From IMG/VR virus record IMGVR_UViG_3300032675_000001, positions 1 to 64,000 of that record: a stretch of DNA of 64,000 nucleotides, one strand, 5' to 3'. Shown piece by piece: positions 32,563-61,675 of the stretch (the stretch's first letter is position 1; the number at the start of each line of letters is the position of its first letter). The position numbers and the translations under genes were made by a program. The notes below the pieces were generated by a model. That model saw nothing but the letters and a program-made list of their open reading frames with translations, did not search any database and was not told the origin of the DNA.

Positions 32563-32646
32563 GATAAATAAAAGCGTAGTTCACGGTGGTGGAACACCTA
32601 ACTACTCTAATGTCATAGAAGGAAACATCAGCAATGACTATTTATT
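32563..32646 (+). ncRNA. Conserved structured endonuclease leader, copy 1
   Basis: GATAAATA..GTAGTT CAC GGTG gtggaa CACC T AACTAC TCTAA TGTC atagaagg AAACA TCAGCA ATG ACTATTTAT. Confidence 0.8.
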
Positions 32647-33284
32647 CACCTACTGGTCACCGAAAGATATATGAACATCATTTCGGTTCCATCCCCAAAG
32701 ATACAACCGGGCGCTCGTATGAGATACATCACATAGATGGTGATCATTCAAATAATGACCCAACTAACCTAAAATGTGTTACCATTCAAGAACATTATGA
32801 TATCCATTATTCGCAAGGTGATTGGGCCGCATGTCTGTTGATTGCGAACCGAATGAAAGTAACAACGAAGGAAAAATCCGAGTTGAGCACTCAGGCAAAT
32901 ACTAAACGAGTAGCAGACGGTTCACATAACTTCTTAGGAAAAAATAACCCATCACACGATAGAGTAGCAAAAGGTATACATAACTTTCAAGGTGAATCTA
33001 ATCCTGCCAAGCAAAAAGTTAAATCCGGCACATATCACATGCAAGAAAAAAATAATCCATCGAAACTTCGCGTAGATGATGGTACACACAACTTCTTAGG
33101 TGAAAGCAACCCATCACATAAAAGAGTGGCAAACGGCACGCACAACTGGCAACAACCAGTTAATGAAAATCATCCAACTCAGTTTAAATGGAAGTGTCCA
33201 CATTGTGATAAAGAGGGCAAAGGCAAAAGTATGTTTAAACGGTGGCATGGTAACAAATGCGGTTCACTGCTCCAAATGTCGTAA
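32634..33284 (+). CDS. Free-standing HNH homing endonuclease with GxHNF repeats and C-terminal zinc finger
   Basis: YEIHHIDGDHSNNDPTNL...EHYDIH; five 18-aa repeats; CPHC...RWHGNKC. Confidence 0.9.
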   Translation: MTIYSPTGHRKIYEHHFGSIPKDTTGRSYEIHHIDGDHSNNDPTNLKCVTIQEHYDIHYSQGDWAACLLIANRMKVTTKEKSELSTQANTKRVADGSHNFLGKNNPSHDRVAKGIHNFQGESNPAKQKVKSGTYHMQEKNNPSKLRVDDGTHNFLGESNPSHKRVANGTHNWQQPVNENHPTQFKWKCPHCDKEGKGKSMFKRWHGNKCGSLLQMS

Positions 33285-34250
33285 TATTCGTTTTTTAGCG
33301 AGTTCTATTTTAATCTTACTGGTAGTTGCGTTTTGTAAGATTGACAAAAGCGTCGGTAGCTTACCATAGGTGCGACTCGCATCATTTACGTCTTTAACAT
33401 CAGTGTCCCAGTTTGGAATACTGACCTGAAAACCCAACTCAAGTGCTTGGTCACAGATAGTCAGTCCCGTTTTATCCTGATCGGGGACTACGATGATAGT
33501 TCTGTTTAGATTTCGCAGAATATCAATCTGTGTTTCATGTATGGTGTTAGAAGTTAATGCACACCCACCAATACTTAAAGCATCAAATATACCTTCTACT
33601 ACAATACAGCAATGTGAATCTGGCTTTTGGAGGTCATATCCAAACAAATATCCCACCTGCTGATCTTTGATATATTTCGGGGTGCGATCATCAAGATAAC
33701 GGCTTACATGACCAACAATCTTGTTTTTAAAAGTATATGGAATGATGATGCGATTGGAATTGCGACCCTCATCATTTGGCGTAACCATATATGGATAATC
33801 TTTGTAGTTCATCCCACGCTTTGTTAGATAATCAATGAACACTTGATGGGCAGGATTGTTTTCGTCAATCAGTTCTGCATTAGGAAGCAAAACTTCCTTA
33901 AACTTGATTGCCTTTTTCTTCTTGACAACTTTAGCAAGATCAAGTAAGTCTCGGTGTTTTAAACTTTCCAAGTTCCATTTAGTGACTTGAGAATCGTCAA
34001 TACCCAACCAACGCATCATTAGCTTGGTATTACCACTGAGTTGCTTCCCTAACGTGAAACCACATTTAAATCCACAGTTGAAGCAATGATATGACCAGTT
34101 AACACCTTCACTGAGTTTGACTCCACCTCTCATACGTTTGTCGGGCTTATGGCCACGATGATGGCAACAGAACGCATTAACGCTTATCCAGCCACTAACC
34201 GTGTGTTTTTTCTTTCCCGGTATTAGAGATAGGACATCAAACATAAACAC
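33264..34250 (-). CDS. DNA primase (gp61-like)
   Basis: N-terminal zinc motif (HCFNCG), RIIIPY, VVEGIFDAL TOPRIM, PDQD, KDVND. Confidence 0.9.
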   Translation of the reverse strand: MFMFDVLSLIPGKKKHTVSGWISVNAFCCHHRGHKPDKRMRGGVKLSEGVNWSYHCFNCGFKCGFTLGKQLSGNTKLMMRWLGIDDSQVTKWNLESLKHRDLLDLAKVVKKKKAIKFKEVLLPNAELIDENNPAHQVFIDYLTKRGMNYKDYPYMVTPNDEGRNSNRIIIPYTFKNKIVGHVSRYLDDRTPKYIKDQQVGYLFGYDLQKPDSHCCIVVEGIFDALSIGGCALTSNTIHETQIDILRNLNRTIIVVPDQDKTGLTICDQALELGFQVSIPNWDTDVKDVNDASRTYGKLPTLLSILQNATTSKIKIELAKKRILRHLEQ

Positions 34251-34291
34251 ATTGTAACATACTTGACGTAAAAATCAAGTGTTATGGTAAC

Positions 34292-35080
34292 TTATCGTGA
34301 TAGAACGTTTGTGACGGCACCAGCATTACTGGTGAACATTACGCGGACATAAGGATGGTATCCTTTAATCACATATCCAAAAGTATCAGTTACATTTGAA
34401 TATACTGTGTTTGTGATTGGATACCAGTCAGCATCTACTTGACATGAACCTTGAATAGTTACGTTTCCAACATATTCATACAATGAGGTTTGAATAGTGA
34501 GGACTGGATTTTCATTTGTATTGATAACGCTAGTATAATAAATGTTGGCATTTGCGTTGCTGATTGGTTGACCATTTGAATATGTCTGATTTGTATTTGG
34601 GAATGGTTGACCGGTAGGAATGGTGACAACATTTGATGGAACAAAGTATGGGTAAACAGAGTTAACGATATTCATATCCCCACGTGCTCCAGCATTCTGG
34701 TCAACGAACACAGGATAGTTTAAGTCCCCTGATGGGAAAATGAGAGAATAGTATGCCTTCTGTGCATCAATGTCTACGAGGTCTGCTGACGTAAGATCAA
34801 GTGTTGCAATACCGTTTGCAGGAAGTTGTAGATTAAGAGTGGAGGATAATAAAATCTGACTCCCATCATAGCTAATGATGTTACATGTGATTGCCAAACC
34901 AGTGATGTCAACAGGCTTCTGTTCTTGATTCAGAAACTGGAACTGAATCTGGTTGTCAACTCCTTTGTTTAATGTTAGTGGTTTTGCATACTGTGGCATA
35001 TAGACCCTCGGTGAAAATCCTGTTTGTATGATAACATATTGCCTCTGAGTATATACAAAGACTGAAGTTGCATAAGACAT
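34292..35080 (-). CDS. Structural protein (baseplate-upper/BppU-like)
   Basis: KGVDNQIQFQFLNQEQKPVDITG; late promoter. Confidence 0.55.
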   Translation of the reverse strand: MSYATSVFVYTQRQYVIIQTGFSPRVYMPQYAKPLTLNKGVDNQIQFQFLNQEQKPVDITGLAITCNIISYDGSQILLSSTLNLQLPANGIATLDLTSADLVDIDAQKAYYSLIFPSGDLNYPVFVDQNAGARGDMNIVNSVYPYFVPSNVVTIPTGQPFPNTNQTYSNGQPISNANANIYYTSVINTNENPVLTIQTSLYEYVGNVTIQGSCQVDADWYPITNTVYSNVTDTFGYVIKGYHPYVRVMFTSNAGAVTNVLSR

Positions 35081-35169
35081 ATTATACTGTTACCCTTTTC
35101 ATCCAGTATTTAGTCTTTGAAATATGAAAATATTAAGTTTTGGATCACCAAACTAAATATACAAAGTAT

Positions 35170-35550
35170 ATGGATAGCAACGACTTTTTCAGTAAATTGA
35201 GCGAAAATCACCCGTTTATAACGGTCTGTTCTTACGCGGGACAAGACTATGTGGGGATTATTCAAAACAGAGATGATATGGTAACGACCATATACGACTA
35301 TGGATCAATTGTAGAACCAGAGTTGAAGTCAAGATTTTTGGAGTTGGGTGATATATGGTGGTGGGAATCAAATAGAACGATTCCCATCAATCTTTTTTTG
35401 AAGCAAGATTGGAACATCTTCAAACCATATATCAAGACGTTCAATAATAAAAGTTTAGTTATACTTCATGGACCAGTGGTGAGCATTAATGATTTCTTGA
35501 AAAAGAGAACCAAAAGACGCTCAATCACCATGGTCAAACGCCTGCCCTAG
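35170..35550 (+). CDS. Hypothetical protein
   Basis: Start MDSNDF after CTAAATA; FLELGDIWWWESNR.IPINLFL. Confidence 0.65.
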   Translation: MDSNDFFSKLSENHPFITVCSYAGQDYVGIIQNRDDMVTTIYDYGSIVEPELKSRFLELGDIWWWESNRTIPINLFLKQDWNIFKPYIKTFNNKSLVILHGPVVSINDFLKKRTKRRSITMVKRLP

Positions 35551-36037
35551 CTTTCTTCTTTTGATCTTTTGTTCTGCGTTCTTTGGCCAACTTAAAAGTT
35601 AAATCGCCAACACGCTGATCAAAGGTGATTCCGATCAAATGGTCATATTCATGTAAGAATACACGGGCTTCCATTCCAGTTATTTCTCTTTCAATGCCTT
35701 CGCCTGCTATATTTTGATACTGCACAATGCATGATACAGGACGCTTTACTTTCATGAATAAGTCAGGGAATGACAGACAACCTTCCATTCCAGACACACG
35801 ATCTTCTGACAGAGAAACAACCTTAGGATTGATGCAAGCAACCATCTTAGTAAAGTTGCCCATGATAAAGATGCGCTTGCTGATTCCGACTTGCGGTGCA
35901 GCGAGACCAACTCCACCATTGTTGATCATGAACTTCATCATTTCCTTGATGAGTTCTTCCGGTGAACCGTCAACCTCAAAGTCCCATTCTGCTGAGACTT
36001 CTGATAGTTCGGGGCTGTTTTCTTTAAGTAGTTCCAT
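35534..36037 (-). CDS. def: Peptide deformylase
   Basis: GVGLAAPQVG, EGCLS, HEYDHL. Confidence 0.95.
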   Translation of the reverse strand: MELLKENSPELSEVSAEWDFEVDGSPEELIKEMMKFMINNGGVGLAAPQVGISKRIFIMGNFTKMVACINPKVVSLSEDRVSGMEGCLSFPDLFMKVKRPVSCIVQYQNIAGEGIEREITGMEARVFLHEYDHLIGITFDQRVGDLTFKLAKERRTKDQKKKARAGV

Positions 36038-36050
36038 TGTTAATCCTTAG

Positions 36051-36242
36051 TCATTTTGCAAGCGTATGCCATAGTATATCACCTTCATTTACCCAAACGA
36101 GAATGGCATCACCTTGACGGTAAAGGTCTTCACTCAGTCCCTCACGCATTTCATCAAACGTGGTTTTTCCACCGTTAGGTATTTTTGCATGTTCCCATCT
36201 TACGGGAGGAAGCTGAAAATCAGGTGGATACTGAGAACTCAT
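36051..36242 (-). CDS. Hypothetical protein
   Basis: 63 aa, ATGA-coupled. Confidence 0.45.
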   Translation of the reverse strand: MSSQYPPDFQLPPVRWEHAKIPNGGKTTFDEMREGLSEDLYRQGDAILVWVNEGDILWHTLAK

Positions 36243-36514
36243 CGTGTCAAAACTTCCATCATCTTTTTCTTGGATTCCTGATCCAATCTAGTATGATGTT
36301 CGTAACGAGAGACGATGCCCATCCCAAGAAAAAACAAACAACAAATGATTGGGAAAACTATAAATCCAAATTTGCTTGAAAGGTATATAAGCAGACCACC
36401 AAATGTGATCCCTGCCAAAGCGGCTCCAACTCCAATTGCAGCATACCCGGCAACATCTTTAATAGCCTTGCCAAGAATATACCATTTAATCACTGGTGTG
36501 TTCCTTTTCCACAT
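36239..36514 (-). CDS. Small membrane protein
   Basis: Two hydrophobic segments. Confidence 0.55.
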   Translation of the reverse strand: MWKRNTPVIKWYILGKAIKDVAGYAAIGVGAALAGITFGGLLIYLSSKFGFIVFPIICCLFFLGMGIVSRYEHHTRLDQESKKKMMEVLTR

Positions 36515-36649
36515 TGTGTTTCAACCATTCTCTGCAAATCATGATAAACTCATCGCGTTGCCAAGCAATCTTTTCGTGACTCAGTTCAACATAATCATTT
36601 GCAATGAAACGAATCAACTGTTCAGCGGTCAGTTGTCTAGTATATTTGC

Positions 36650-39872: not shown

Positions 39873-40571
39873 CTATTTTGGTTTCTGTTTGCACTTATCA
39901 CCATGATACTTACTGAAGTTTGGCTTGCCTACCATTTTATCACAGTAAATACAAGTTACTCGGATTGTATTTGGGTTCGGGATATTACGAGCAATGCGGG
40001 TAGCTTTTTGTTTTTGTATACTCTCGTCTGTGCGTTTATCGGTCCCGTTCTGTCTTCTAGTATCCCATCGTTTTGCGTTGCTTTCAGGCGTGTTTGGATT
40101 CATAGTTCCGTTACGTTTTCTAGATTCAAGCTGTTTGACAACCCGTTCTGGTGTTTGGGTATTAATGGTTCCATTCTTCCGGCGAGATTTTATTAAACTG
40201 GCAGTATGTTCCGGTGTCCTATCGTATGATCCGTTTTCTTTTCTAATAGTCACTGCCTTTTTGATTGTCTCTTCCGTGTGTTCTATGCCTTCGCCTGATT
40301 CTGGAATTAGATTAGCCCATGTCTTGTGTCCGAATTCGTCCCGTTCATACACTACATTCCATAACTCACTGTAGTATAATCCCCAGTGACGAAGTTCATC
40401 ATTAGTCTGACATTCCTTGAGTATTTCCGTAGTAACATCATATCCGTGTTTTCTAAGGTGCGGTTTCCATAGGTCACCTGACCCTTTGTATTTGTAGGGG
40501 TCTTGCGAGGTTTTTCCAAGGTATTTAAACCCTGTTTTGTTATGGGTCTTCTTATACAAATAAATAGTCAT
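39873..40571 (-). CDS. Free-standing GIY-YIG-like (Seg-like) homing endonuclease with RxxNGT repeats and zinc finger
   Basis: IYLYKKTH..TG.KYLGKT..DPYKYKGSG..W..HL...WANLIPESG; CIYC...YHGDKC. Confidence 0.85.
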   Translation of the reverse strand: MTIYLYKKTHNKTGFKYLGKTSQDPYKYKGSGDLWKPHLRKHGYDVTTEILKECQTNDELRHWGLYYSELWNVVYERDEFGHKTWANLIPESGEGIEHTEETIKKAVTIRKENGSYDRTPEHTASLIKSRRKNGTINTQTPERVVKQLESRKRNGTMNPNTPESNAKRWDTRRQNGTDKRTDESIQKQKATRIARNIPNPNTIRVTCIYCDKMVGKPNFSKYHGDKCKQKPK

Positions 40572-40647
40572 AGCTGATGCTCCTTCTAAGCGTTAGTGTA
40601 GTTGGGAATTGGCGTTCCGTGAGCTACATCAGATATGACTATTTATC
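40560..40647 (-). ncRNA. Conserved structured endonuclease leader, copy 2
   Basis: GATAAATAGTCATATCTGAT GTAGCT CAC GGAA cgccaa TTCC C AACTAC ACTAA CGCT tagaagg AGCA TCAGCT ATG ACTATTTAT. Confidence 0.8.
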
Positions 40648-41944: not shown

Positions 41945-42781
41945 TTAGTAGTCCAACTTCTTTATTGTAAATGGATACTGTGCTTCCTTATAAAAAGCCT
42001 TACGTTGCGTTAGGTGTCTCTTTGCAAACTTGCAGGTACTTGTTAGGTCCCAAATCTGCACAAAATCCTTGTCTTCCGCTTTTCTTACACCACGCCCAAT
42101 GCTCTGAATAACACGAACAAACGACTTACCAGGTTCAATAAGTACCAAGTTAAAGATACGAGGAATATTGATACCGACAGCCGCAACGCCATACGTGGCG
42201 ACAATAATCTTGTCATCACTCGTGGCCACTTCATCGTATTCTTCCTTTCTTTCTGTTAGTTTAGTGTTTCCGTTGACAAACACCGCGTTGTCCAATCGGC
42301 TCACTAACTCTTTTCCTGCATTCACACGGTCTACTAGGACCAACGTGTTGCCAGTTTTATTGATTTCTTTGATTAGAGAAGCCATCTTATCTAATCGCTT
42401 TTCATCTTCTAAGAGATGTTTGAGTTCAGCCTGATAGTTGGAAAACTCCTTGTTATCTTTCATCTGAATGATGTTTACGTGGCAGTTAGCCAGAACTCCC
42501 TTATCCTGTAGTTCTTTTGCGCCAAGCTTTCCGACAACTGGACCAAGAGATACTAACAGTGATACTTGATCCATCAAATCCTTTGGAATCGTCCCTGTCA
42601 ATCCCCAACGAATAGGTATGTCAGAAAACACTCCTGTTAGCATAGTCTTAAGTACATCGGCCTTTGCCATGTGGCAGTTGGAAACTACTGCTCCATCAAC
42701 TATGTAATTATGATCATTTTCAATATGGAGATTGAACACTTCGTCGGGTTTATCAATTTCAGTTTTTCTTATTAGCTTCAT
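41945..42781 (-). CDS. uvsW: Split intein C-part (35 aa) fused to the C-terminal half of a UvsW-like SF2 helicase
   Basis: VFNLHIENDHNYIVDGAVVSN|CH; GLTGT, GINIP, QSIGRGVR helicase motifs III, V and VI. Confidence 0.92.
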   Translation of the reverse strand: MKLIRKTEIDKPDEVFNLHIENDHNYIVDGAVVSNCHMAKADVLKTMLTGVFSDIPIRWGLTGTIPKDLMDQVSLLVSLGPVVGKLGAKELQDKGVLANCHVNIIQMKDNKEFSNYQAELKHLLEDEKRLDKMASLIKEINKTGNTLVLVDRVNAGKELVSRLDNAVFVNGNTKLTERKEEYDEVATSDDKIIVATYGVAAVGINIPRIFNLVLIEPGKSFVRVIQSIGRGVRKAEDKDFVQIWDLTSTCKFAKRHLTQRKAFYKEAQYPFTIKKLDY

Positions 42782-43673
42782 ATAACTTCCTTATTTTTGT
42801 TGCGGTTTTTTCATCGAATCCGGAGAGGTCAGTGGGACAGCCATTAGTCAATAGCCATTCCTGTGTCACGATAATGACTCTAAAACCATTTTGGTTAGCC
42901 CACTCGTTGAGTGCAACTATTTTTGCGTCAAATATCTCACCTTTACATAACTCCGCCGGTTTCACTTCCGCTACCTGTTTGGTTTCATAGTCAACAAAAT
43001 CAGCTATGTATATTTTTCGATTACCGTTGATAGTGTATTCCAATCTCAACGTTTCATATTCTGCATCCGGATACATATACTGAAACAACGCTTCCCAGCT
43101 TGATCTATATTTCTTTCCGTTAAATTCTGCTGCCCAATGCGTATTTCGATTGTTAGAATTTGGGGTAAAGTCTCCGGCTAATATTTTAGCTTTCATCACA
43201 TCTGACCGGTGTTGTTTATCTTGGTCAGACATTTTTACACCATGCATTCCGTTTGCTTCCCCGCTATTTGCTCGGGAGGCGATGCGGCTATCGGTGTGTT
43301 TAGTCAACCCCTTTGCCCATGAAGTTTGGAGTCCGGTCTTTCCTTTATTCCATGGCACTCCTGTATTTAAATTGCGGCTACTAAGTTCAGGATGTAGTTT
43401 ATGGACTGCTTCACCACCAATTGCGGCAAGCTTGGCCTTTATTTCCCGATCGGTTATCAATCCAGCGAGAAGCAAATCCATGTTCTTCACCCAAAGATCA
43501 GTCTTGATATTCATCACTCTCTTTTTGAACTTGCCAAACTCGGGCTGTATTAATATCTCGCCAGTTGATAATTCTAATGTTGCTTTTCCAAAATCAACTA
43601 CCCTTACCCGTTGGTCATATGTTTCTAGTCGTCCATTTAATCGGACTTTCCATTGTTCATATGTAATTTTCAT
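42759..43673 (-). CDS. Free-standing endonuclease (TnsA-N/PD-(D/E)XK-like with NUMOD3-like motifs) between the split-intein halves
   Basis: PWNKG, GEANGMHG, YRSSWE...YE...YIADF...EVKP; start is likely MKITY at 43673 after SD AGGAG. Confidence 0.8.
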   Translation of the reverse strand: MKITYEQWKVRLNGRLETYDQRVRVVDFGKATLELSTGEILIQPEFGKFKKRVMNIKTDLWVKNMDLLLAGLITDREIKAKLAAIGGEAVHKLHPELSSRNLNTGVPWNKGKTGLQTSWAKGLTKHTDSRIASRANSGEANGMHGVKMSDQDKQHRSDVMKAKILAGDFTPNSNNRNTHWAAEFNGKKYRSSWEALFQYMYPDAEYETLRLEYTINGNRKIYIADFVDYETKQVAEVKPAELCKGEIFDAKIVALNEWANQNGFRVIIVTQEWLLTNGCPTDLSGFDEKTATKIRKLYEANKKN

Positions 43674-43700
43674 AAATACTCCTGCCTTAGCCATATGTAT

Positions 43701-44717
43701 TTATGTTTTGTTTACGATTTCGTGATTTTCAGTAAGTTCGTCTGCCCGACACCATCCTAGGTTTGTTAGAAACTTATGATTTCCGGTAACCCTAATTACA
43801 CTTCCATTATCAAATTCCATTTCATACATTTTTTCAGTGGAAGATATTGTAAGATTCCGGTGTTGTTTTACTACTGTATCTTCCTTAAAGATTCCGGACT
43901 GTTCGCAATAATTGATTATTTTATCTCCAACTTTAACGTCCTTGATTGGTAGATGCCCATTCGGGGTTAGCACTCTGGCTTCTCCATCAAAACATTCGTC
44001 AACCATCACACATACAACGTCTTCAAAAAAGAATTCGTCCATTTCTGGATCAGCATCTTCATCCTTAACCGATTTGAATAGGTTATTTAGAGATTGCCAT
44101 GTGCAAATGGTATGTGTCTTACCGTATTCTTTACGATCACCAAAGTAGACACCCACATCTAGTCCAAGATTGATGTAGTCTGCCTCTGTTTGCACCACCA
44201 GAGACTTGTTAGGGACGATTACAAGCGATCTACCATATCTTTCTATACATTGTGATAGTCCAGCAGTGATAAGCGTCTTACCGGCTCCTGTGGCAACTTC
44301 TTGCAATGCCTGTGGATTAGATAAAAAGGTGTTAATAATCTCAACCTGATAGTCTCGCAATAAGATTGGTTTTCCTTCTGCTGGATGACCCTTTGGCCAT
44401 AGTGTTTCAGCGAAGGTATCTTCTTTGATCAAATCAAATTCTAGGTCTTGACGGCTGCGATGATCTTCCAACTCAATATCATAATCATGATCTATCAAAT
44501 ATGGAATGATCTGATCTAACAGGTTGAGATATGTGCTTCCGGCTAGAGAGAAGTAACTTACTTTTCCGTTCCACCTACCAAGTCTTACGGCAGGTAAAAA
44601 TCTTGCACCTGGTTTTTCGTACTCAAACTTTTTTGTTAATGCTCTTCGGACATCTAGTTCAAGTCCTTCTATTTTTACATTAACTTCATCTTTGATTATT
44701 ATTTTTGCTTCTCTCAT
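43701..44717 (-). CDS. uvsW: N-terminal half of a UvsW-like helicase fused to a split intein N-part (97 aa, 43704-43994)
   Basis: LRDYQ, ATGAGKT, VMVDE|CFDGEARVLTPNG (block A), VTGNHKF (block B). Confidence 0.92.
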   Translation of the reverse strand: MREAKIIIKDEVNVKIEGLELDVRRALTKKFEYEKPGARFLPAVRLGRWNGKVSYFSLAGSTYLNLLDQIIPYLIDHDYDIELEDHRSRQDLEFDLIKEDTFAETLWPKGHPAEGKPILLRDYQVEIINTFLSNPQALQEVATGAGKTLITAGLSQCIERYGRSLVIVPNKSLVVQTEADYINLGLDVGVYFGDRKEYGKTHTICTWQSLNNLFKSVKDEDADPEMDEFFFEDVVCVMVDECFDGEARVLTPNGHLPIKDVKVGDKIINYCEQSGIFKEDTVVKQHRNLTISSTEKMYEMEFDNGSVIRVTGNHKFLTNLGWCRADELTENHEIVNKT

Positions 44718-47721: not shown

Positions 47722-47774
47722 AACTACCCTTCATTGTTTTTATATACAAAAATAATTCATATGTCAAGAAGAGA

Positions 47775-47854
47775 GATAAATAGTCGTGAGTCGCGGAAGC
47801 CCAATTCCCACTCACTCTAATGCTATGAAGGAGCAATCAGCATGACTACTTATT
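47775..47854 (+). ncRNA. Conserved structured endonuclease leader, copy 3
   Basis: GATAAATAGTC GTGAGT CGC GGAA gcccaa TTCC C ACTCAC TCTAA TGCT atgaagg AGCA ATCAGC ATG ACTACTTAT. Confidence 0.8.
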
Positions 47855-48540
47855 CAAAAAACAGAACACCCAGCAAAATTTATCGTAAAATTTACGAAGA
47901 TTACTATGGTCCAATCCCAATAGATGCTGATGGAAAATCCTATGAAATTCATCATATAGACGGCAATCATAAAAATAACGACCCATCTAATTTAATCGCA
48001 GTATCTGCACAAGAACATTATGATATTCATTATTCCCAAGGCGATTGGGGAGCTTGCTGGTTAATGGCAGAAAGACTGAAGTTGTCATCAAAAGAAATAT
48101 CAGAATTGGCACGATTGGCGGCGAATAGAAGAGTAGAAAATGGAACTCACAACTTCCAAGATTCGGAGTCCCAGAGAGAAAAAGCACTGAGAATGGTCCG
48201 TGAAGGGACAAATGTTTTTGTTGGCGGCGAAATTCAACGCCAACACAATAGACGCAGAGTAAATGATGGTTCACACCATTTACTCAAACGTCCCGATGGA
48301 ACAAGTCACTCATCAGATAGAGTTAATGCAGGAACCCATAATTTTCAAGACAGCAAGTCTCAGCAGGAAAGAGCATTGAAAAGGGTTAAAAATAAAACTC
48401 ACAATTTTCAAAAAAGAGAAGGATATGAACATCCTTCAACGTCCGAAAAATGGTATTGCCATACTTGCAAAAAAGAAGGAAAGAATGCGGGAAGTAGAGG
48501 TAGATACCACAAAGGACATGAGGTTACTATAATTAAATAG
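47842..48540 (+). CDS. Free-standing HNH homing endonuclease with GTHNF repeats and zinc finger
   Basis: YEIHHIDGNHKNNDPSNL...EHYDIH; CHTC...RYH. Confidence 0.9.
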   Translation: MTTYSKNRTPSKIYRKIYEDYYGPIPIDADGKSYEIHHIDGNHKNNDPSNLIAVSAQEHYDIHYSQGDWGACWLMAERLKLSSKEISELARLAANRRVENGTHNFQDSESQREKALRMVREGTNVFVGGEIQRQHNRRRVNDGSHHLLKRPDGTSHSSDRVNAGTHNFQDSKSQQERALKRVKNKTHNFQKREGYEHPSTSEKWYCHTCKKEGKNAGSRGRYHKGHEVTIIK

Positions 48541-49768: not shown

Positions 49769-49829
49769 GATGTATCTCCCATTTCACTGTCACTGTTATA
49801 GCACATATAATGATGATGTCAAGCAGAAA

Positions 49830-49911
49830 GATAAATAAAGTTGTAGTTCGCGGAATGGGGATTCCCAACTACTCTAACGCTTAAGAGGAGCAATCAGCAT
49901 GAATATTTATC
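49830..49911 (+). ncRNA. Conserved structured endonuclease leader, copy 4
   Basis: GATAAATAAAGTT GTAGTT CGC GGAAT gggg ATTCC C AACTAC TCTAA CGCT taagagg AGCA ATCAGC ATG AATATTTATC. Confidence 0.8.
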
Positions 49912-50627
49912 ACGCGACAAATGACCGTTCACCTTACACATATTTGATCGGATGGACAAAACATAATATATGGTATTATGGAGTAAGATATGCTAAAGGG
50001 TGTCACCCATCCGAATTCTGGATAAAATACAAAACTTCATCGAATTATGTAGCAGACTTCGTGGCGGTGCATGGTGATCCAGATATTATACAAATAAGAA
50101 AAACATTTACTAATGTTGAATCCGCCAGGCAGTGGGAAACCAAAGTACTCAAAAGATTAAAAGTAATCAAATTAGAGAAATGGCTGAATAAACATGATGG
50201 TAAGGCAGTAGACCCTGCAATCCTATCTATCACAACAGCCCGCATGAATGCGAACATGACTTCGGAAGAAAAAACTCAACGCGGAAAGAAAGGTATGGAT
50301 TCAAGATGGTCTACGGATTCTTCCCTTCGTCCAATAATAGAAATAGTTTGTCCTGTTTGCGGAACACGCATTATCACAAGGGACCCGCATATATCCACGT
50401 GCAGTAAAAAATGTGGATATATTAATAGACCATCACAAAAAAACATACCAAAACTGAAAAACAGTAAAACATATATCATTCAATATCCAGATAATACTGA
50501 ACACATTATTACAGGACTTCGTAAATTCTGCATAGAACATTGTCTCACAGAAAGAATACTATCCAGTACTCTTTCCGGTAAAAGAAACAAACAACATAAG
50601 GGATACAAAATTGTAAAGGCATTATAA
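49899..50627 (+). CDS. Free-standing GIY-YIG-like homing endonuclease with zinc ribbon and NUMOD1-like C-terminus
   Basis: PYTYLIGW...WYYGVRY...YKTSS...WETKVL...WLN; CPVCG...CSKKC; FCIEH...HKGY. Confidence 0.8.
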   Translation: MNIYHATNDRSPYTYLIGWTKHNIWYYGVRYAKGCHPSEFWIKYKTSSNYVADFVAVHGDPDIIQIRKTFTNVESARQWETKVLKRLKVIKLEKWLNKHDGKAVDPAILSITTARMNANMTSEEKTQRGKKGMDSRWSTDSSLRPIIEIVCPVCGTRIITRDPHISTCSKKCGYINRPSQKNIPKLKNSKTYIIQYPDNTEHIITGLRKFCIEHCLTERILSSTLSGKRNKQHKGYKIVKAL

Positions 50628-50642: not shown

Positions 50643-51053
50643 TTACCCCTTAATTGATCCAAAGAACCGAATGATGTTTTCCATCACGGTGTCCGTGCGT
50701 TTACTGTTGCAGGAGCTACACACGAACTCACAGTTATGACAAAGAGTTGATCCATAACGATACGGAATAACGTGGTCTGCCGTTGCCTCAGGACAAAATC
50801 CATATTCGTTAATATGGAACTGAACGCCACAATCTTTACATTTGAAATCCTGCAAAGACAAAAGGTAAATTTTTCTTTGCCTATCTTTTTCGCTTTTGCT
50901 AAAAGACCTGCTACTTCTCCGAATCCTCTTAGGCGGCAGCCGACTATTGAGGAAGTTCTGCAAAGCAATATAGTTGCGGTGCATTCCTTGGGTTAGAACC
51001 AATTCGGATTTCACGGTAAACAATCTCTCTTTTGCTACATTCTCACCATACAC
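50643..51053 (-). CDS. HNH nuclease (McrA-like zinc-binding type, no conserved leader)
   Basis: CKDCG...ADHVIP...G...NCEFVCSSCNSKR. Confidence 0.8.
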   Translation of the reverse strand: MYGENVAKERLFTVKSELVLTQGMHRNYIALQNFLNSRLPPKRIRRSSRSFSKSEKDRQRKIYLLSLQDFKCKDCGVQFHINEYGFCPEATADHVIPYRYGSTLCHNCEFVCSSCNSKRTDTVMENIIRFFGSIKG

Positions 51054-57588: not shown

Positions 57589-59136
57589 TTAGCCTAGGAT
57601 GGCATAGAATGGTAATGGCATAATAATCTCATCATGGTCACGAATATGAGATTCAAGATCACCATGATAATCAGCAAGTTGTGTCATTATGCGAACAGCA
57701 AGTAACGATGCCATAACTAAGTCATCATGATCACCTATCTTTGCTGCATAACTGCCAGCATGTGCCACAAAGGCTTTTAGTTCTGAAATCAATGGGCGAC
57801 TATTAACAGTTAGCTTTTTTGATTCAAGAAGCGTCTTGAACTTAGCACAAGCAGCCAGTTTCGGTTTCTGACTAGTGTTGAAACCTCTGCGCTTTTTTCC
57901 CGGTTCACTGAGGAATACACCTTGAATGTTTGATTCACCATATTCATTTAGTGAAATAAGAGCGGCTTCACCTATGCTGTTGTTTTCAAGTGAATAATAG
58001 ATATTATTTGGCTCACCTGTGCATTCTGCTATGTATTTGTTGATTTCCGCCAACAGCTTGATCTGATTAGGAATATCAGTCTTGTTATGCTTCCATTCAC
58101 CAATCTGAGTGGTGGTAGATGCTTCAAATATCTGAATGGCGGCAGGATCGCCACCTGTTCCCAATGATGGGTCAAGAGCAACGACATAAAGATGTCCCTT
58201 TTCTGGCTTTTTATACCAACGAACTTGTCCCATGCGTGAGATTGGCTCAATGCCTTCAAGTTGGATAAGCGTATTTGGATTAATAAGTGTTTCGTCAGCG
58301 ATGATGAATTCACAACCGATTTCACGATTGAAACGATCTTCACCTAGCTGTGCTTGCATTTCCTGTGCCCATTTATCGTCTCTTCCTGGCTGCTCTTTCC
58401 AGTGTGCACGATAGGCTCTAAATCCGTTTACGCCTACTTCTGTGGTATTTCCAAACTCATCTTCTGTCTTGTTAGCACCTTTCCAAATGAGAGCAAACTG
58501 ATCTTCGTCAGAGTTTGGTGTTGATGTGATGATTGCTTTACCACCGGTTGCCAATGTAGGAGTAATGGCAGTCCAGAACTCTGTTGCGATTGATGGTCTA
58601 ACGAACGCAAACTCGTCCAGATATAACAATGAGATAGACATACCACGACCTGTATTTTCAGTTGTGGTGGCAGAAACGATACGTGAACCATTCTCAAAGT
58701 CAATAGAACCTTTGTTATAGGTTGTTACTCCTGCTTTAATATGATCTGGGCAGTTTTCATAAGCATAACGAATACGCTGCATGATTTCTTGAGCACCTTG
58801 ATATTTGTGTGCTGCAATCAGAATAGTAGAATCCTGCACAAACATCGCATACCAAAGTAGATATCCAGCGGCTGATGTTGATTTACCAGACTGACGAGGC
58901 ATCAATGAGATTGAGTAGCGATACTTATGATAAGTTTCAATCAGTCTCTCTTGATAAGGCCAAGGGTGATAATGCATTGCACCTCTTGTTGGGTGCTGAA
59001 TCATAAAGAAGTTATCCATAAAATACAGATAACCGGTAGCTGGATCACAACACTTTAGGAAATCATCCAGTTCTTTTTGAGTTTTATATACCGTCTTTTG
59101 GTATGGTGGTTTAATTAATGTTGGTGTATTTGCCAT
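57589..59136 (-). CDS. Terminase large subunit (gp17-like)
   Basis: PRQSGKST, LYLDEFAF, ITSTPN, ALDPSLG, HDDLVMA. Confidence 0.95.
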   Translation of the reverse strand: MANTPTLIKPPYQKTVYKTQKELDDFLKCCDPATGYLYFMDNFFMIQHPTRGAMHYHPWPYQERLIETYHKYRYSISLMPRQSGKSTSAAGYLLWYAMFVQDSTILIAAHKYQGAQEIMQRIRYAYENCPDHIKAGVTTYNKGSIDFENGSRIVSATTTENTGRGMSISLLYLDEFAFVRPSIATEFWTAITPTLATGGKAIITSTPNSDEDQFALIWKGANKTEDEFGNTTEVGVNGFRAYRAHWKEQPGRDDKWAQEMQAQLGEDRFNREIGCEFIIADETLINPNTLIQLEGIEPISRMGQVRWYKKPEKGHLYVVALDPSLGTGGDPAAIQIFEASTTTQIGEWKHNKTDIPNQIKLLAEINKYIAECTGEPNNIYYSLENNSIGEAALISLNEYGESNIQGVFLSEPGKKRRGFNTSQKPKLAACAKFKTLLESKKLTVNSRPLISELKAFVAHAGSYAAKIGDHDDLVMASLLAVRIMTQLADYHGDLESHIRDHDEIIMPLPFYAILG

Positions 59137-59160
59137 AGTATAATTATTTAGCTTAATATG

Positions 59161-59451
59161 CTACTTTTTTGAGAAGGGATGTTCCCCCGTAAGATGCGGT
59201 TTAGCAAACATTACTTTGAACCATTCAGGATCGCCCGGTCTGATGTTATTGTCTCGCATGTATTGAGCTTTTTGAGCGCCTGTTATTTCGTGGTTGTTGT
59301 CTAGTCTATCACCGTTTAGATCATAGTACTTGGGAATGCCAGCTAACCGCTTTAGTTCGTCTACTGACATATCTTTTTCTTCAGGAGGAGTAAACTCAGT
59401 GAACCCTTGGTAAGCGTTCATTAGCTTAGCTTGTTTGAATGGATCAAACAT
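59161..59451 (-). CDS. Hypothetical protein
   Basis: ELKRLAGI, NIRPGDPEWF. Confidence 0.6.
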   Translation of the reverse strand: MFDPFKQAKLMNAYQGFTEFTPPEEKDMSVDELKRLAGIPKYYDLNGDRLDNNHEITGAQKAQYMRDNNIRPGDPEWFKVMFAKPHLTGEHPFSKK

Positions 59452-60395
59452 TAATATCCGCCTGTTAATGGACTACGCTTCCAAGTATTTGTAGCAGTAC
59501 ATACATAGATATAGTTTGCATCCCAACATATTTGTCCGGGTGTTCCGGTGGCGTTAGATGCTTTAGTTGTTTGCGGTGCTTTCAATAAGCCTGTGATAGT
59601 GATGTTGTTGGCACCGATATTACCTGCGTAATCTTTTAACTGAGGGCCATATTTAAACTGACTGCCATCGTAAGTTACGATGTTGCCTTGACCATCAGTT
59701 GATCCTACTGAGCTTACATAGAATCCACCATTTACTGATAGTGTAGCACTGCCATTAAATGCGATATTACCATCAGTTCTTAATTCAATGATATCATTCT
59801 GATTGCTGTCCTGTACTAGTACATTGCCGGGTGTAGTTAATGTATTAGAGTCATCAAATGTCCAACTGTTGTCTGAACCAGCTACAGTTATAGTAACATT
59901 AGCATTTGTATCTAATGTTAATGTAGTGTTGCCATTAATTAAGTTTGATTGTAATCCTGTAGCACCGTTGACTTCTAAAACTCCGTCATGAACTGTTAGT
60001 CCCGCAATGTTTGCTGTATTTGCTGAGTCCGTGATATAGATAGTACCAGGCCCTAACCACAAGTTAGCCCAACGATGTGTTTCGTCACCTAAGAAATAAA
60101 TATTATCTGCGGCGGGTGATACATTAGCAGTGATTAATGTATTATCAATAAATGTCAGATTTGCTGAAGCACCAAATAAGTTGCCGCCTGCGTTGAATTG
60201 TACTGCGCCGACCGATCCGGCTGGCGCGCCATTGCCCGCAAGCCCAATTGGAAGCCCGCCCGGAGTGCTACCATCGCTGTAGTATAACGCATTAGTATCT
60301 GGATTCCACCAAATGCGACCCGTTTCACCTACATAGTTGGCCGAGTTAGCGTTATTGTCTCTACTCGTAAATACTTTTTGAATAAAACCACTCAA
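59451..60395 (-). CDS. Fibre-like structural protein
   Basis: SDGSTPGG, VQFN, LGDETHRWANLW, C-terminal GQICWDANYIYVCTATNTWKR. Confidence 0.7.
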   Translation of the reverse strand: MSGFIQKVFTSRDNNANSANYVGETGRIWWNPDTNALYYSDGSTPGGLPIGLAGNGAPAGSVGAVQFNAGGNLFGASANLTFIDNTLITANVSPAADNIYFLGDETHRWANLWLGPGTIYITDSANTANIAGLTVHDGVLEVNGATGLQSNLINGNTTLTLDTNANVTITVAGSDNSWTFDDSNTLTTPGNVLVQDSNQNDIIELRTDGNIAFNGSATLSVNGGFYVSSVGSTDGQGNIVTYDGSQFKYGPQLKDYAGNIGANNITITGLLKAPQTTKASNATGTPGQICWDANYIYVCTATNTWKRSPLTGGY

Positions 60396-60405
60396 GGTAA
60401 TCTCC

Positions 60406-60753
60406 TTAAACGTCTAGTGGTTCGTCATCACCCAATGCGTCTAGTACGACTGGATTGATACCTGCGTTACGTTTAATTGCAGCAAGTTCATTGTAGTGAT
60501 GAACTTCATCTTCTGATTCTTCTTCGGTGTCATAGATATTATCGACGCCAGTTGCTTTTTTGAGAAGTTCAAGTTTCATCTGCAACGGCGGAACAAAGAT
60601 ATCATCAGGTGCATGTGCAAGACCATTGTCATCACCGCATCCACAATCTTCACCGCCTTCAGATTCATAATCTGCGCCAGTTGCTGGGTGCATTCCGCCC
60701 TCTTTGGCATCAAGCATGTCTGCTAATCCACGTAATATTTCACTTGGTCTCAT
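60406..60753 (-). CDS. Acidic probable internal head protein
   Basis: MRPSEIL start, PPLQMKLELLKK, IKRNAGI. Confidence 0.55.
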   Translation of the reverse strand: MRPSEILRGLADMLDAKEGGMHPATGADYESEGGEDCGCGDDNGLAHAPDDIFVPPLQMKLELLKKATGVDNIYDTEEESEDEVHHYNELAAIKRNAGINPVVLDALGDDEPLDV

Positions 60754-60792
60754 AGTAAACTCCGTATGTTGTATTTATGCTTTACATAACAA

Positions 60793-60815
60793 ATCACCCG
60801 CAAAACGCGGGTGAC
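60793..60815 (-). terminator. Intrinsic terminator
   Basis: TCACCCGC-aaaac-GCGGGTGA. Confidence 0.7.
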
Positions 60816-60839
60816 TGTTCAATCAAATTTAAAAGGTGC

Positions 60840-61529
60840 TCACTTGATATCTAGTGGACGAGCCTTAGTTGCGACGATGCAGAAATATTTCTCTTTGACT
60901 GTCTTCTGTCCTTCTTCTCCATGTGACAGATTAACATCAAACTCAAGATTGTTAAACTTATCAATGTTGAAGCCGGTACGAATAAGAAGGGCGGCCAACT
61001 GATTAGCGCCGAAAACGCTATAATGATTTGGATTGTATTCGTGACCGCGTTCACAATCTGGTGCTGGAACTTCAATATAAATCTTTGAGCCTTGTTTCAA
61101 TACGCGATTGTATTCCATTAATGTGAAAATAGGATATGGTGAATGTTCAAGTGATTGGCGAGCAAAGATGAAATCTACAGATTCGTCATAATATCCCTCT
61201 TTCTGAGGCAAGAATGACATATCATACTTTTTAATAGTATGACCATTTGCTTCACAAATCTTGATATCTTCTGGACTCAAAGAAATTCCAACAAGATCGG
61301 TATAGCCACGGTCTTTCATTTCATCTAAGAAGTATCCTACGCCACATCCTATATCAAGAATCTTGGAATCCTTTGGGAGTTCCATAGGGTCAATATAAGT
61401 TTCTACTACCTGAGTGGTCAACTTCTTGTGGAAGTCGCTTTCCCCCTCATCATAGATGTGGCAATTAACTAGCCACTCATAGTAAAATTTAAGTTTAACA
61501 GCGTCAAAAACTTGGTTTATATCAATCAT
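60840..61529 (-). CDS. Class I SAM-dependent methyltransferase
   Basis: ILDIGCGVG, DFIFARQSLEH, RVLKQG..YIEVP; real start MIDINQ at 61529. Confidence 0.85.
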   Translation of the reverse strand: MIDINQVFDAVKLKFYYEWLVNCHIYDEGESDFHKKLTTQVVETYIDPMELPKDSKILDIGCGVGYFLDEMKDRGYTDLVGISLSPEDIKICEANGHTIKKYDMSFLPQKEGYYDESVDFIFARQSLEHSPYPIFTLMEYNRVLKQGSKIYIEVPAPDCERGHEYNPNHYSVFGANQLAALLIRTGFNIDKFNNLEFDVNLSHGEEGQKTVKEKYFCIVATKARPLDIK

Positions 61530-61593
61530 TTGTAATCCTGTATAAGTTATAAAATTACTTATGCTATGTTCAATCGTTAAATTTTTATTTGAT

Positions 61594-61675
61594 GATAAAT
61601 AAAAGTGTAGTTCGCGGGCGTCCACTCCCCAACTACTCTAATGCTATAAAGGAGCGATCAGCATGTCTATTTATC
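61594..61675 (+). ncRNA. Conserved structured endonuclease leader, copy 5
   Basis: GATAAATAAAAGT GTAGTT CGC GGG cgtccact CCC C AACTAC TCTAA TGCT ataaagg AGCG ATCAGC ATG TCTATTTATC. Confidence 0.8.

Follow-up and report, generated by a model that had tools for sequence, protein, structure and literature searches.

Control of homing endonuclease synthesis in T4-family phages is documented for I-TevI, I-TevII, I-TevIII, segB and Aeh1 mobE, where a late promoter lies directly upstream of the nuclease gene and its sequence can pair with the start region, thereby limiting nuclease synthesis (PMC2988022). These are single, gene-specific hairpins on the mRNA strand. In IS10/Tn10 the transposase gene is controlled by two face-to-face promoters (pIN/pOUT), and RNA-OUT, a stably folded antisense RNA of 69 nt, is complementary to the translation initiation region of RNA-IN, overlaps the sense promoter by its 3' part and acts in trans, so it could give copy-number-dependent inhibition (PMC5006887). 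The CfrI antisense RNA of cyanophage S-PM2 lies opposite a homing endonuclease gene in a T4-like phage that uses NATAAATA late promoters (PMC2984593); it is about 225 nt long, links the nuclease gene to psbA, is a single case and has no known function. Conserved 5' hairpins with TATAAATA, carrying a late-promoter box, were described upstream of free-standing GIY-YIG and Vsr-like endonuclease ORFs in marine metagenomic "fractured gene" loci, including next to gp41-type helicase genes, and were read as sense translational attenuators (Dassa et al. 2009, PMC2677866); no covariance model, strand test or inverted box was reported there, and the identity of those hairpins with the element described below was not examined. 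Phage P22 sar RNA and the antisense RNAs of type I toxin-antitoxin systems are small cis-antisense RNAs of about 60–70 nt covering the ribosome binding site of a harmful or tightly limited gene.

Here we analyse a cassette of roughly 85 bases found in front of five selfish nuclease genes of a giant freshwater phage (IMG/VR record IMGVR_UViG_3300032675_000001, positions 1 to 64,000; this 64,000-nt stretch is referred to as the window) and in over 100 uncultured relatives. In contrast to the T4 hairpins, this is one conserved multi-helix module shared by unrelated nuclease families, with its helices selected on the other strand and with a second inverted box. As in IS10, a folded antisense RNA of about 70 nt is proposed, but both promoters would be T4-type late boxes and not sigma-70 promoters, the overlap is the whole leader of about 70 nt, the AUG itself lies upstream of the predicted antisense start, and the RNA has two hairpins; there is no sequence similarity to IS10, no Rfam match and no experimental evidence. 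Unlike CfrI, the module is short and lies over the 5' leader. It shares neither sequence nor fold with P22 sar RNA and the type I antitoxin RNAs, which use other promoters.

Distribution and architecture of the module

The initial annotation described five copies of a conserved structured leader ahead of five endonuclease genes, and this observation is confirmed: all five copies lie where they were placed, and each range runs exactly from box to box (Table 1). The core pattern CTAAYGCTNNNRRGGAGC(N)ATCAGC matches 4 times in the window against 0.00 expected in 100 shuffles, copy 1 being a variant in which P3 has changed. Building a covariance model from the copies had been proposed as a check; model R1 scores the five copies at 76–96 bits and the next hit in the window at 18 bits, so that there is no copy before core genes or before the HNH gene at 50643, as had been claimed. 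A match to an existing Rfam family was the outcome specified in advance as removing novelty, and none was found in Rfam 15. Nothing matched in cultured phages either, whereas an exact pattern found at least 120 loci in IMG/VR. Copies are usually multiple per genome.

Table 1. Positions of the module copies and their parts in the window. Boxes are late-promoter-like; no antisense transcript has been observed.
Copy	Feature	Position (strand)	Details
1	Module, box to box	32563..32646 (+)	Heads HNH_3 gene 32634-33284(+), start codon 32634(+); 77.8 bits; P1 32576-81/32600-05; R:Y 32583/32599 (A:T); P2 32585-88/32595-98; P3 32607-13/32625-31, inner stem changed to GT/AC
1	Sense box	32563..32570 (+)	GATAAATA, 5 nt before P1
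1	Predicted antisense RNA	32563..32632 (-)	About 70 nt: G, P3 hairpin, A, P1/P2 hairpin, U-rich tail; inferred
1	Antisense box	32639..32646 (-)	AATAAATA on the - strand, inside codons 2-5 of the nuclease gene
2	Module	40559..40647 (-)	Heads seg-like (phrog_314) gene 39873-40571(-), start codon 40571(-); 75.6 bits; only copy oriented the same way as its neighbours; P1 40622-27/40598-603; P2 40615-18/40605-08; P3 40589-96/40574-81
2	Sense box	40640..40647 (-)	GATAAATA, unusual 12-nt spacer to P1
2	Predicted antisense RNA	40573..40647 (+)	75 nt if it runs to the sense box; no U run directly after the hairpin; MFE -20.0 antisense against -9.6 sense
2	Antisense box	40559..40566 (+)	AATAAATA on the + strand
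2	Extended closing helix P0	40560..40646 (-)	About 20 bp; ATAAATAGTCATATCTGAT (40646-40628) pairs with ATCAGCTATGACTATTTAT (40578-40560); duplex -21.8 kcal/mol; would bury the AUG in read-through transcripts
3	Module	47775..47854 (+)	Heads HNH_3 gene 47842-48540(+), start codon 47842(+); 84.5 bits; P1 GTGAGT/ACTCAC at 47786-91/47810-15, three compensatory pairs; P2 47795-98/47805-08; P3 47817-24/47832-40
3	Sense box	47775..47782 (+)	GATAAATA
3	Predicted antisense RNA	47775..47841 (-)	67 nt
3	Antisense box	47847..47854 (-)	Imperfect, AATAAGTA on the - strand
4	Module	49830..49911 (+)	Heads gene 49899-50627(+), start codon 49899(+), of the YTYLI..YYG family, which looks GIY-YIG-like but has no Pfam hit; 95.7 bits; P1 49843-48/49867-72; R:Y 49850/49866; P2 49852-55/49862-65; P3 49874-81/49889-97
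4	Sense box	49830..49837 (+)	GATAAATA, 5 nt before P1
4	Predicted antisense RNA	49830..49898 (-)	About 69 nt
4	Antisense box	49904..49911 (-)	GATAAATA on the - strand
5	Module	61594..61675 (+)	Heads HNH_3 gene 61663-62262(+), start codon 61663(+); 94.6 bits; P1 61607-12/61631-36; P2 61616-19/61626-29; P3 61638-45/61653-61
5	Sense box	61594..61601 (+)	GATAAATA
5	Predicted antisense RNA	61594..61662 (-)	About 69 nt; inferred as for copy 4
5	Antisense box	61668..61675 (-)	GATAAATA on the - strand

Three of the five nuclease genes are HNH_3. The two genes that had been called GIY-YIG-like match homing-endonuclease PHROGs, but they have no Pfam hit within the reporting limit of E 0.01. Across the loci found, the downstream genes include members of the HNH_3, HNH, GIY-YIG/SegE and TnsA-like nuclease families.

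The stems covary as had been claimed, and much more strongly once the relatives are added. Absence of covariation in a larger alignment had been set beforehand as grounds for rejecting a functional RNA structure; in 104 sequences, however, 96.6% of cells pair and 234 cells changed on both sides against 62 in shuffles, with 0 of 500 shuffles reaching that value. Some details of the initial description have to be corrected. What was taken for a 3x1 CRC/Y internal loop is a real R:Y pair (G:C 79, A:T 10, A.C 22, G.T 0) flanked by two invariant single-base bulges. The CTAA and TCAG elements are not single-stranded but form the outer part of P3, which extends to 8 bp. P3 itself covaries in variant copies (ACT/AGT, TCT/AGA, GTC/GAC, AGTT/AACT, CTATGATT/AATCACAG).

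Strand on which the helices are selected

The interpretation given in the initial annotation is only partly supported. A conserved, structured and portable module that is shared by unrelated nuclease families, starts at a late-promoter-like box and is absent from Rfam 15 is confirmed, but the idea that the structure works in the nuclease mRNA is not supported. Over 19 pairs in 111 distinct sequences, the coding strand shows 1846 Watson-Crick cells, 241 A.C/C.A, 12 G.T/T.G (all 12 in the last P2 pair) and 10 others. In P1 plus R:Y there are 42 A.C-type and 0 G.T-type cells. This pattern of tolerated non-Watson-Crick pairs shows selection on the opposite strand. So 88.1% of cells pair on the coding strand and 99.0% on the opposite strand, the antisense alignment having 306 double-change cells against 78 in shuffles (0 of 500). 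RNAalifold finds the two-hairpin fold de novo on the antisense alignment at -19.6 kcal/mol; the script values are -20.5 antisense against -13.6 sense. Single-sequence MFE is -19.6 antisense against -16.8 sense (p = 2e-12).

These data make the sense-strand reading unlikely. In this reading the hairpins fold in the late nuclease mRNA and act as a 5' stabiliser, a Shine-Dalgarno hairpin or an operator for a shared repressor protein. In its favour, the sense promoter geometry places P1 at the very 5' end of the mRNA, P1/P2 also fold on the sense strand, the Shine-Dalgarno sequence lies in P3, and the two invariant bulged bases could be a protein contact; the protein-operator (C-loop) idea was not tested here, and the bulges leave room for it. 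However, G.U pairs, which are normal in mRNA helices, are absent from P1 plus R:Y, while A.C mismatches are tolerated there, and P3 would carry one invariant A.C and a second C.A in 68% of copies. This reading also does not explain the frame-independent TATTTAT box described below.

The antisense-type wobble pattern is the same whether the nuclease gene runs with its neighbours (19 against 0) or against them (60 against 0). The antisense RNA therefore cannot depend on neighbouring transcription. This bears on another possibility, which we consider doubtful, namely that the element acts within long transcripts of the opposite strand without a dedicated small RNA, as a terminator, insulator or processing site separating antisense transcription through the nuclease gene from the next phage gene. 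It agrees with the strand on which the helices are selected, with the U-rich tract following the hairpin, and with the sigma-70-like promoter (TTGACA, 16–18 nt, TATAAT-like) that follows immediately on that strand in 21 of 70 loci with a divergent neighbour. On the other hand, in co-oriented nuclease genes, which show the same structural selection, no phage gene is transcribed on that strand, and a plain terminator explains neither P3, the invariant bulges, nor the conserved inverted box at a fixed 5-nt distance.

Since G.T is also tolerated in DNA hairpins, the strand bias alone does not exclude single-stranded DNA. A DNA-level element (a hairpin in single-stranded DNA of one strand, or a cruciform, used in recombination, priming or cassette exchange between nuclease genes) would be in line with the sharp box-to-box boundary with 7-bp inverted ends and with the bulges being invariant, as they are in folded attC sites. 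We regard it as very unlikely: the element is built from expression signals at working distances (promoter boxes, Shine-Dalgarno sequence and start codon), homing by double-strand-break repair needs no such site, and no recombinase gene is associated with it.

The inverted box and the proposed antisense RNA

The conserved "M-x-I/T-Y" start of the nucleases, previously taken as four codons belonging to the module, is a nucleotide box (TATTTAT) and not a protein motif. It occurs in all three reading frames, and Ile is ATT in 74 of 75 cases against a 41% background (p = 1e-27). It is about as conserved as the sense box, with which it does not covary at the flanking position, and is better read as a second NATAAATA box on the opposite strand. 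The motif NATAAATA lies 15–45 nt upstream of many structural genes in the window; NATAAATA and (a/g)CTAAATA are documented late-promoter variants (PMC2984593, PMC2988020). A 5-nt spacer from box to helix occurs in 75 of 108 sense and 76 of 108 antisense cases, matching a T4 late promoter, whose TATA box spans -13 to -6 (PMC2988020).

The two boxes are complementary to each other, and their pairing (P0) appears in the MFE of 73–82% of box-to-box RNAs. It is possible, therefore, that the second box is conserved as a helix arm rather than as a promoter. Classical T4-type control as the main function, in which P0 buries the start region in read-through transcripts while late transcripts lack the 5' arm and are translated, seems doubtful nevertheless. 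The window has such a hairpin at 43672-43712, on an endonuclease-like gene. P0 is 15–20 bp in copy 2 and in the loci L070 and L081, the top-ranked copies whose upstream neighbour could be called are co-oriented with it, and true box pairs give -6.68 kcal/mol against -6.12 +/- 0.16 for shuffled partners. But in most copies P0 is only 6–7 A-U pairs closing a large junction, 10 of 13 CTAAATA boxes face a U without compensation at the flanking position, and RNAalifold does not predict P0 on either strand. About two thirds of these genes lie opposite to their neighbours, where read-through on their own strand is unlikely, and the antisense bias of P1, P2 and P3 is not explained.

We consider it about as likely as not, and more likely than any alternative above, that the module is a self-contained expression-and-restraint cassette for free-standing homing endonuclease genes in phages that use T4-type late promoters. 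The sequences themselves show that it runs from one NATAAATA box to a second, inverted one inside codons 2–5 of the nuclease gene, that between the boxes lie two adjacent helices, P3 (8 bp with a 7-nt loop that carries the Shine-Dalgarno sequence or its complement) and P1-R:Y-P2 with its bulges, and that compensatory changes and wobble pairs fit the transcript of the strand opposite to the nuclease gene. The rest is inference, beginning with the promoter activity of either box, which is inferred from sequence only; no transcript has been observed. In this view the boxes are late promoters facing each other. The sense promoter would start the nuclease mRNA at the first base of P1. The antisense promoter would start an RNA of about 70 nt at the G just before P3, which folds as hairpin P3, one linker A and hairpin P1/P2, and ends in the U-rich tail ACUUUUAUUUAU, the complement of the sense promoter. 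Some observations do not fit this scheme well. The hairpin with its U-rich tail was not called by a simple terminator scan; the U run starts 2–3 nt after the stem and is interrupted. About 10% of antisense boxes, that of copy 3 among them, are imperfect (TACTTAT), and these T-to-C variants would be G.U pairs only in a long antisense transcript spanning both boxes, which agrees with the long-transcript reading and not with a short RNA starting downstream of the box. The two invariant bulges are not explained by simple antisense pairing. In nuclease genes oriented the same way as their neighbours, P0, lengthened in copy 2, would add a T4-style block on read-through transcripts.

The proposed RNA is fully complementary to the 5' leader of the mRNA, including the Shine-Dalgarno sequence. 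It would therefore lower nuclease synthesis, by blocking ribosome binding, by creating an RNase III substrate, or by promoter collision. The invariant A.C mismatches would keep the same region weakly folded, and so translatable, in the mRNA, while the antisense RNA stays stable. The base-pairing pattern thus suggests that the module encodes a small antisense RNA that restrains the selfish nucleases of these phages rather than a folded mRNA leader.

The module family and the genes it precedes

The five copies of the module lie where the initial annotation placed them, each running exactly from a GATAAATA box to a TA(T/C)TTAT box just after the start codon, and the observation itself is confirmed. 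The core string CTAAYGCTNNNRRGGAGC(N)ATCAGC occurs four times in the window against 0.00 expected, copy 1 being a variant with a changed inner part of helix P3. A covariance model (R1), the kind of search that had been suggested in advance for this element, scores the five copies at 76–96 bits and nothing else in the window above 18 bits. The module is therefore absent from core genes and from the HNH gene at 50643, as was claimed. A match to an existing Rfam family had been named beforehand as the result that would deprive the element of novelty. However, no hit to Rfam 15 was obtained for any copy on either strand at the gathering threshold or at E up to 10 in scans of the whole window, and in a scan of a 111-nt slice with copy 4 the only hit was a chance 11.6-bit Lysine fragment. 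A passing resemblance of the antisense GCUGAUG to the hammerhead core was dropped for this reason.

The window is part of the 360,683-bp contig IMGVR_UViG_3300032675_000001. Megablast and blastn searches of 50,697 cultured-phage records returned no match at the DNA level. The DnaB-like helicase next to copy 1 is 46–48% identical to those of the jumbo phages PA5oct, Phosso and Atu_ph07, and the window also encodes a UvsX-like recombinase, large terminase, primase and RNA ligase. The NATAAATA motif lies 15–45 nt upstream of many structural-region genes on the minus strand, which fits a T4-type late promoter: NATAAATA is the consensus in T4-like cyanophages (PMC2984593), while TATAAATA at −13 to −6 and an (a/g)CTAAATA variant are described for the T4 family (PMC2988020). 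The requirement of a late promoter box directly upstream of the nuclease gene, as in T4-type control of homing endonucleases, is fulfilled, since a TAAATA core lies upstream in 104 of 109 distinct leaders.

An exact-pattern scan of IMG/VR returned at least 120 loci (designated L001–L120; L023 is identical to the window). After removal of duplicates about 110 distinct leaders remain, all of which have the box, the helices P1, P2 and P3 and the second box. R1 found 17 further copies in the same loci that fail the strict pattern. Many loci carry two or three modules within 10 kb, and the contig of the window has at least six, five in the window and one in locus L036. All six have different P2 stem and loop sequences but near-identical P3. 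Among contigs of metagenome-assembled genomes only eight carry the pattern, and these come from unrelated phyla, so they give no indication of the host.

Downstream genes were tabulated, as had been proposed for the element, for 98 ORFs of at least 120 aa. With Pfam, 13 hit HNH_3, 11 HNH, 7 GIY-YIG or SegE_GIY-YIG, 21 NUMOD3, 2 TnsA-like and 2 the I-TevI DNA-binding domain. With PHROGs, 49 fall in phrog_314, 27 in phrog_655 and 16 in phrog_12324, all annotated as homing or intron-like endonucleases. The module is thus shared by at least three nuclease folds. Single-linkage clustering of the 98 proteins merged HNH and GIY-YIG genes through shared DNA-binding modules and was useless for counting families. 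Three downstream proteins (those of L029, L035 and L057), which have an N-terminal zinc-finger-like CxxC motif, hit a PHROG labelled “head closure”. L029 and L035, presumably the two TnsA-like Pfam hits, match it strongly and L057 weakly (E 1.2e-06). All three also hit endonuclease PHROG families. The “head closure” label was set aside as a probable mislabelling, and the genes may correspond to the “Vsr-like” homing endonucleases of Dassa et al. 2009. Some copies precede decayed ORFs of 4–87 aa.

Of the five genes in the window three are HNH_3, in agreement with the initial annotation. The other two, described there as GIY-YIG-like, match homing-endonuclease PHROGs, but their membership in GIY-YIG nucleases is only suggested by motif spacing and weak profile matches. 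Neither has a Pfam hit at E of 0.01 or better, SegE_GIY-YIG scores E 0.32 for the gene at 40571(−), and phrog_314 (“homing endonuclease”) scores 6.9e-06. Profile searches of the PDB for the two families were empty, and hhalign between them gives E 0.003 but only 10.8% probability, so that the assignment is left undecided by these data. Other module-headed genes do hit GIY-YIG or SegE (7 of 98).

Coordinates of genes, modules and neighboring elements (window positions unless a locus is named)
Feature	Position	Strand	Remarks
470-aa ORF	20840–22252		No PHROG match
Freshwater-2 RNA (RF02980)	22250–22341	−	Full-length; 61 bits against a threshold of 49.9; starts about 8 nt after a GTATAAATAC late-promoter box and ends at the ATG of the 470-aa ORF; here the motif looks like a late-mRNA 5' leader
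Start region of DnaB-like helicase	32513–32597	−	Longest ORF starts at a GTG inside module copy 1; a start at the ATG at 32513 is more likely, leaving a 49-nt gap with no recognizable promoter
Module-headed gene, GIY-YIG-like	40571 (start)	−	
Endonuclease-like ORF (311 aa, phrog_15427)	42759–43694		
Inverted repeat CATAAATAC/GTATTTATG	43672–43712	−	Encloses the Shine-Dalgarno sequence and touches the ATG of the 311-aa ORF; classical T4-style late-promoter/RBS hairpin; weak R1 hit (18 bits)
Sigma-70-like promoter	47739–47767	−	Opposite the nuclease gene, directly beside the sense box, pointing at the neighboring phage gene
Sigma-70-like promoter	49795–49822	−	Opposite the nuclease gene, directly beside the sense box, pointing at the neighboring phage gene
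Module-headed gene, GIY-YIG-like	49899 (start)	+	
HNH gene without module	50643–51053		
Sixth module of the contig, outside the window	L036:4386–4486	−	Followed by a truncated 30-aa seg-like ORF
Modules without a box next to P1	L012:2642–2741; L086:2836–2935; L086:4347–4446		A TATAAATA box lies about 35–40 nt further upstream, followed by an extra small hairpin and a TGACAAC/TGTCAAC motif

Helices of the module and the strand of selection

Lack of significant covariation in a larger alignment had been specified at the outset as evidence against a functional RNA structure, and the enlarged alignment shows strong covariation instead. In 104 MAFFT-aligned leaders the pairs of P1 (6 bp), a single R:Y pair, P2 (4 bp) and inner P3 (3 bp) are formed in 96.6% of cells, with 234 double changes against 62 in shuffles (0 of 500). 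The element described initially as a 3x1 internal loop is really a base pair (G:C 79, A:T 10, A.C 22, G.T 0) between two invariant single-base bulges. The variant copies show that P3 covaries: GCT/AGC becomes ACT/AGT, TCT/AGA, GTC/GAC, AGTT/AACT, ATCT/AGAT or GATC/GATC. They also show that the “constant single-stranded” CTAAY and ATCAG are the outer five pairs of an 8-bp P3, the compensatory examples being CTATGATT/AATCACAG and CTATAACT/AGTTACAG. P1 and P3 are separated by one nucleotide, and the P3 loop is 7 nt in 106 of 111 copies. YUNR U-turn motifs occur in 90 of 111 antisense P3 loops, but they were not used as evidence since no valid null was available for them.

The main change to the first reading concerns the strand. 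Over the 19 pairs in 111 distinct sequences the cells on the coding strand of the nuclease are 1846 Watson-Crick, 241 A.C or C.A, 12 G.T or T.G (all in the terminal P2 pair) and 10 other. In P1 plus R:Y the count is 42 A.C-type against 0 G.T-type, and an A.C on one strand is a G.U on the other. Pairing is 88.1% on the sense alignment (A7) and 99.0% on the independently aligned antisense set (A8), with 0 of 500 shuffles reaching it. RNAalifold run de novo on A8 returns the same 19-pair two-hairpin structure, apart from the register of one P3 pair at the optional bulge, at −19.6 kcal/mol. In a separate calculation the consensus energy is −20.5 antisense against −13.6 sense, and single-sequence folds also favor the antisense strand (−19.6 against −16.8, p = 2e-12). 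The expectation of T4-type control that regulatory helices are selected on the mRNA strand is thus not fulfilled, whereas the expectation of cis-antisense control with convergent promoters (IS10 RNA-OUT type) that the antisense RNA has a conserved stable fold of its own is.

One P3 pair is an invariant A.C in the mRNA sense and G.U in the antisense, and a second one is C.A in 68% of copies. The same DNA therefore gives a solid 8-bp hairpin in the antisense RNA and a weak one around the Shine-Dalgarno sequence in the mRNA. The bias is not an arm-specific sequence constraint, because C.A also appears at pairs whose usual form is C:G. It does not depend on neighboring transcription either, as co-oriented nuclease genes show 19 antisense-type and 0 sense-type wobbles and opposite-oriented ones show 60 and 0.

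The nuclease gene lies opposite to both neighbors in 56 loci, with them in 22, and the arrangement is mixed in 19. This bias differs from T4, where free-standing endonuclease genes mostly share the direction of their neighbors. A divergent neighbor often has a sigma-70-like promoter (TTGACA, 16–18 nt, TATAAT-like) directly beside the sense box, on the strand opposite the nuclease gene: 21 of 70 loci with a divergent neighbor against 2 of 34 co-oriented loci, with a background of 0.068 per 45 nt. Examples are TTGACA-17-TATAAA next to copy 3 and TTGACA-16-TATAAC next to copy 4, as well as those of L050, L054, L068, L075, L103 and L115. When the upstream gene is co-oriented, it ends at the box. 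The conserved unit is sharply box to box.

The inverted box and box-to-box pairing

The TATTTAT after the start codon occupies all three reading frames (84, 14 and 10 cases), giving M-x-I-Y, M-I-F-I or M-Y-L. Where it is read as Ile-Tyr, Ile is ATT in 74 of 75 cases against 41% elsewhere in the same genes (p = 1e-27), and Tyr is TAT in 65 of 75 against 68%. It is a nucleotide element and not, as was suggested initially, a set of conserved codons. On the opposite strand it reads NATAAATA and is about as well conserved as the upstream box. Both boxes lie 5 nt from a helix, in 75 of 108 copies for the box to P1 and in 76 of 108 for the box to the G before P3. The sequence requirement for a promoter on the opposite strand inside the 5' end of the target gene is thereby satisfied, but promoter activity was not assayed and the question of such a promoter is not settled by the motif alone. 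With the T4 geometry of a box at −13 to −6, the sense transcript would start at the first base of P1 and the antisense transcript at the base before P3.

The antisense transcript would read G, P3 hairpin, A, P1/P2 hairpin and then ACUUUUAUUUAU, with a total of 67–75 nt in the window copies. The tail is the complement of the sense promoter. The P3 loop and 5' strand are the complement of AAGGAG, and the predicted RNA covers the whole leader up to 1–3 nt before the AUG, so that complementarity to the ribosome binding site of the target is present. As to a defined 3' end, the hairpin is followed by ACTTTTATTTAT, with a mean of 6.8 U in 12 nt. A simple terminator scan does not call the hairpins, however, and copy 2 lacks the adjacent U run, so an intrinsic terminator is neither established nor excluded by these observations. 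It is the sequence of the predicted RNA alone that is described here, as its existence and any repression of the target were not measured.

Since the two boxes are complementary over 6–7 A-U pairs, longer transcripts can close the element by a further helix (P0), as in the T4-type hairpins where the promoter forms the 5' arm of a helix burying the SD/AUG in read-through transcripts. P0 appears in the MFE of 73–82% of box-to-box RNAs. Nevertheless, flank covariation is weak (64 paired against 54 expected at one position and none elsewhere), the RNAalifold consensus fold omits P0, and true box pairs are only slightly better than shuffled partners (−6.68 against −6.12 ± 0.16 kcal/mol). P0 as the organizing helix was rejected on the basis of the flank covariation and the consensus fold. 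Whether it buries the start region in the family as a whole is not decided by these data, as P0 is clearly lengthened only in a few co-oriented copies. Copy 2, the only one in the window transcribed with its neighbors, has about 20 bp that bury the AUG, and L070 and L081 have 15 bp. A plain T4-style promoter/start hairpin also exists in the window on another, endonuclease-like gene (ORF 42759–43694). P0 is read here as an extra layer used where read-through occurs.

Possible mechanism and its meaning

The analysis itself establishes the conserved element, its helices, the strand of selection, the nucleotide-level inverted box and the symmetric geometry. It is only an inference that both boxes fire late and that the antisense RNA pairs with the mRNA leader and lowers nuclease synthesis, or that the two polymerases interfere with each other. 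The alternatives are a leader folded in the sense mRNA, P0 as the main function, an element of long opposite-strand transcripts, and a DNA-level hairpin, but none of them explains the strand bias, P3 and the second box together. The interpretation given in the initial annotation is only partly supported: its specific claim of an mRNA leader or operator is probably wrong about the strand. That the helices act on the opposite strand is held with high confidence, while a dedicated small antisense RNA restraining the nuclease is about as likely as not.

The closest working analogue is pIN/pOUT of IS10, with a 69-nt antisense RNA against the transposase initiation region, an overlap with the sense promoter and copy-number-dependent inhibition (PMC5006887). 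The closest relatives by context are the T4-family nuclease hairpins (PMC2988022), the conserved hairpins with TATAAATA seen upstream of GIY-YIG and Vsr-like ORFs in marine metagenomes (PMC2677866), whose sequences were not compared with the module, and CfrI (PMC2984593). The kind of mechanism is known, whereas the RNA family, having no counterpart in Rfam, is apparently new, and it is much larger than could be seen from the window alone.

A further possibility, rather unlikely but not excluded, is that the modules encode a family of structured antisense RNAs of about 70 nt, made from a late promoter hidden in the first codons of the nuclease gene and shared by HNH, GIY-YIG and TnsA-like homing endonucleases across uncultured giant freshwater phages. 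Because P3 and the linkers are nearly identical between copies while the P2 stem and loop differ in every copy of one genome, these RNAs could form a trans-acting network. Such a network would cap total nuclease output as copy number or co-infection rises (multicopy inhibition), with the P2 loop tuning copy specificity. This would be a shared “governor” that selfish nucleases exchange by recombination.

The case also shows that strand assignment by wobble asymmetry can overturn a “leader” annotation. The model R1 and the alignments A7 and A8 could seed an Rfam family and serve as a marker for annotating free-standing nuclease genes in metagenomic phages. Homing endonucleases must be expressed enough to spread but not enough to harm their phage, and the known controls are gene-specific hairpins and autorepression. 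The present finding points to one exchangeable regulatory cassette, with strong covariation, used by at least three unrelated nuclease folds in more than a hundred uncultured phage contigs. If the antisense reading holds, it would be the first conserved antisense-RNA family dedicated to homing endonucleases and an example of convergent T4-type late promoters, and it would show a clear design rule, in which A.C in the mRNA and G.U in the antisense RNA keep one strand open and the other folded.
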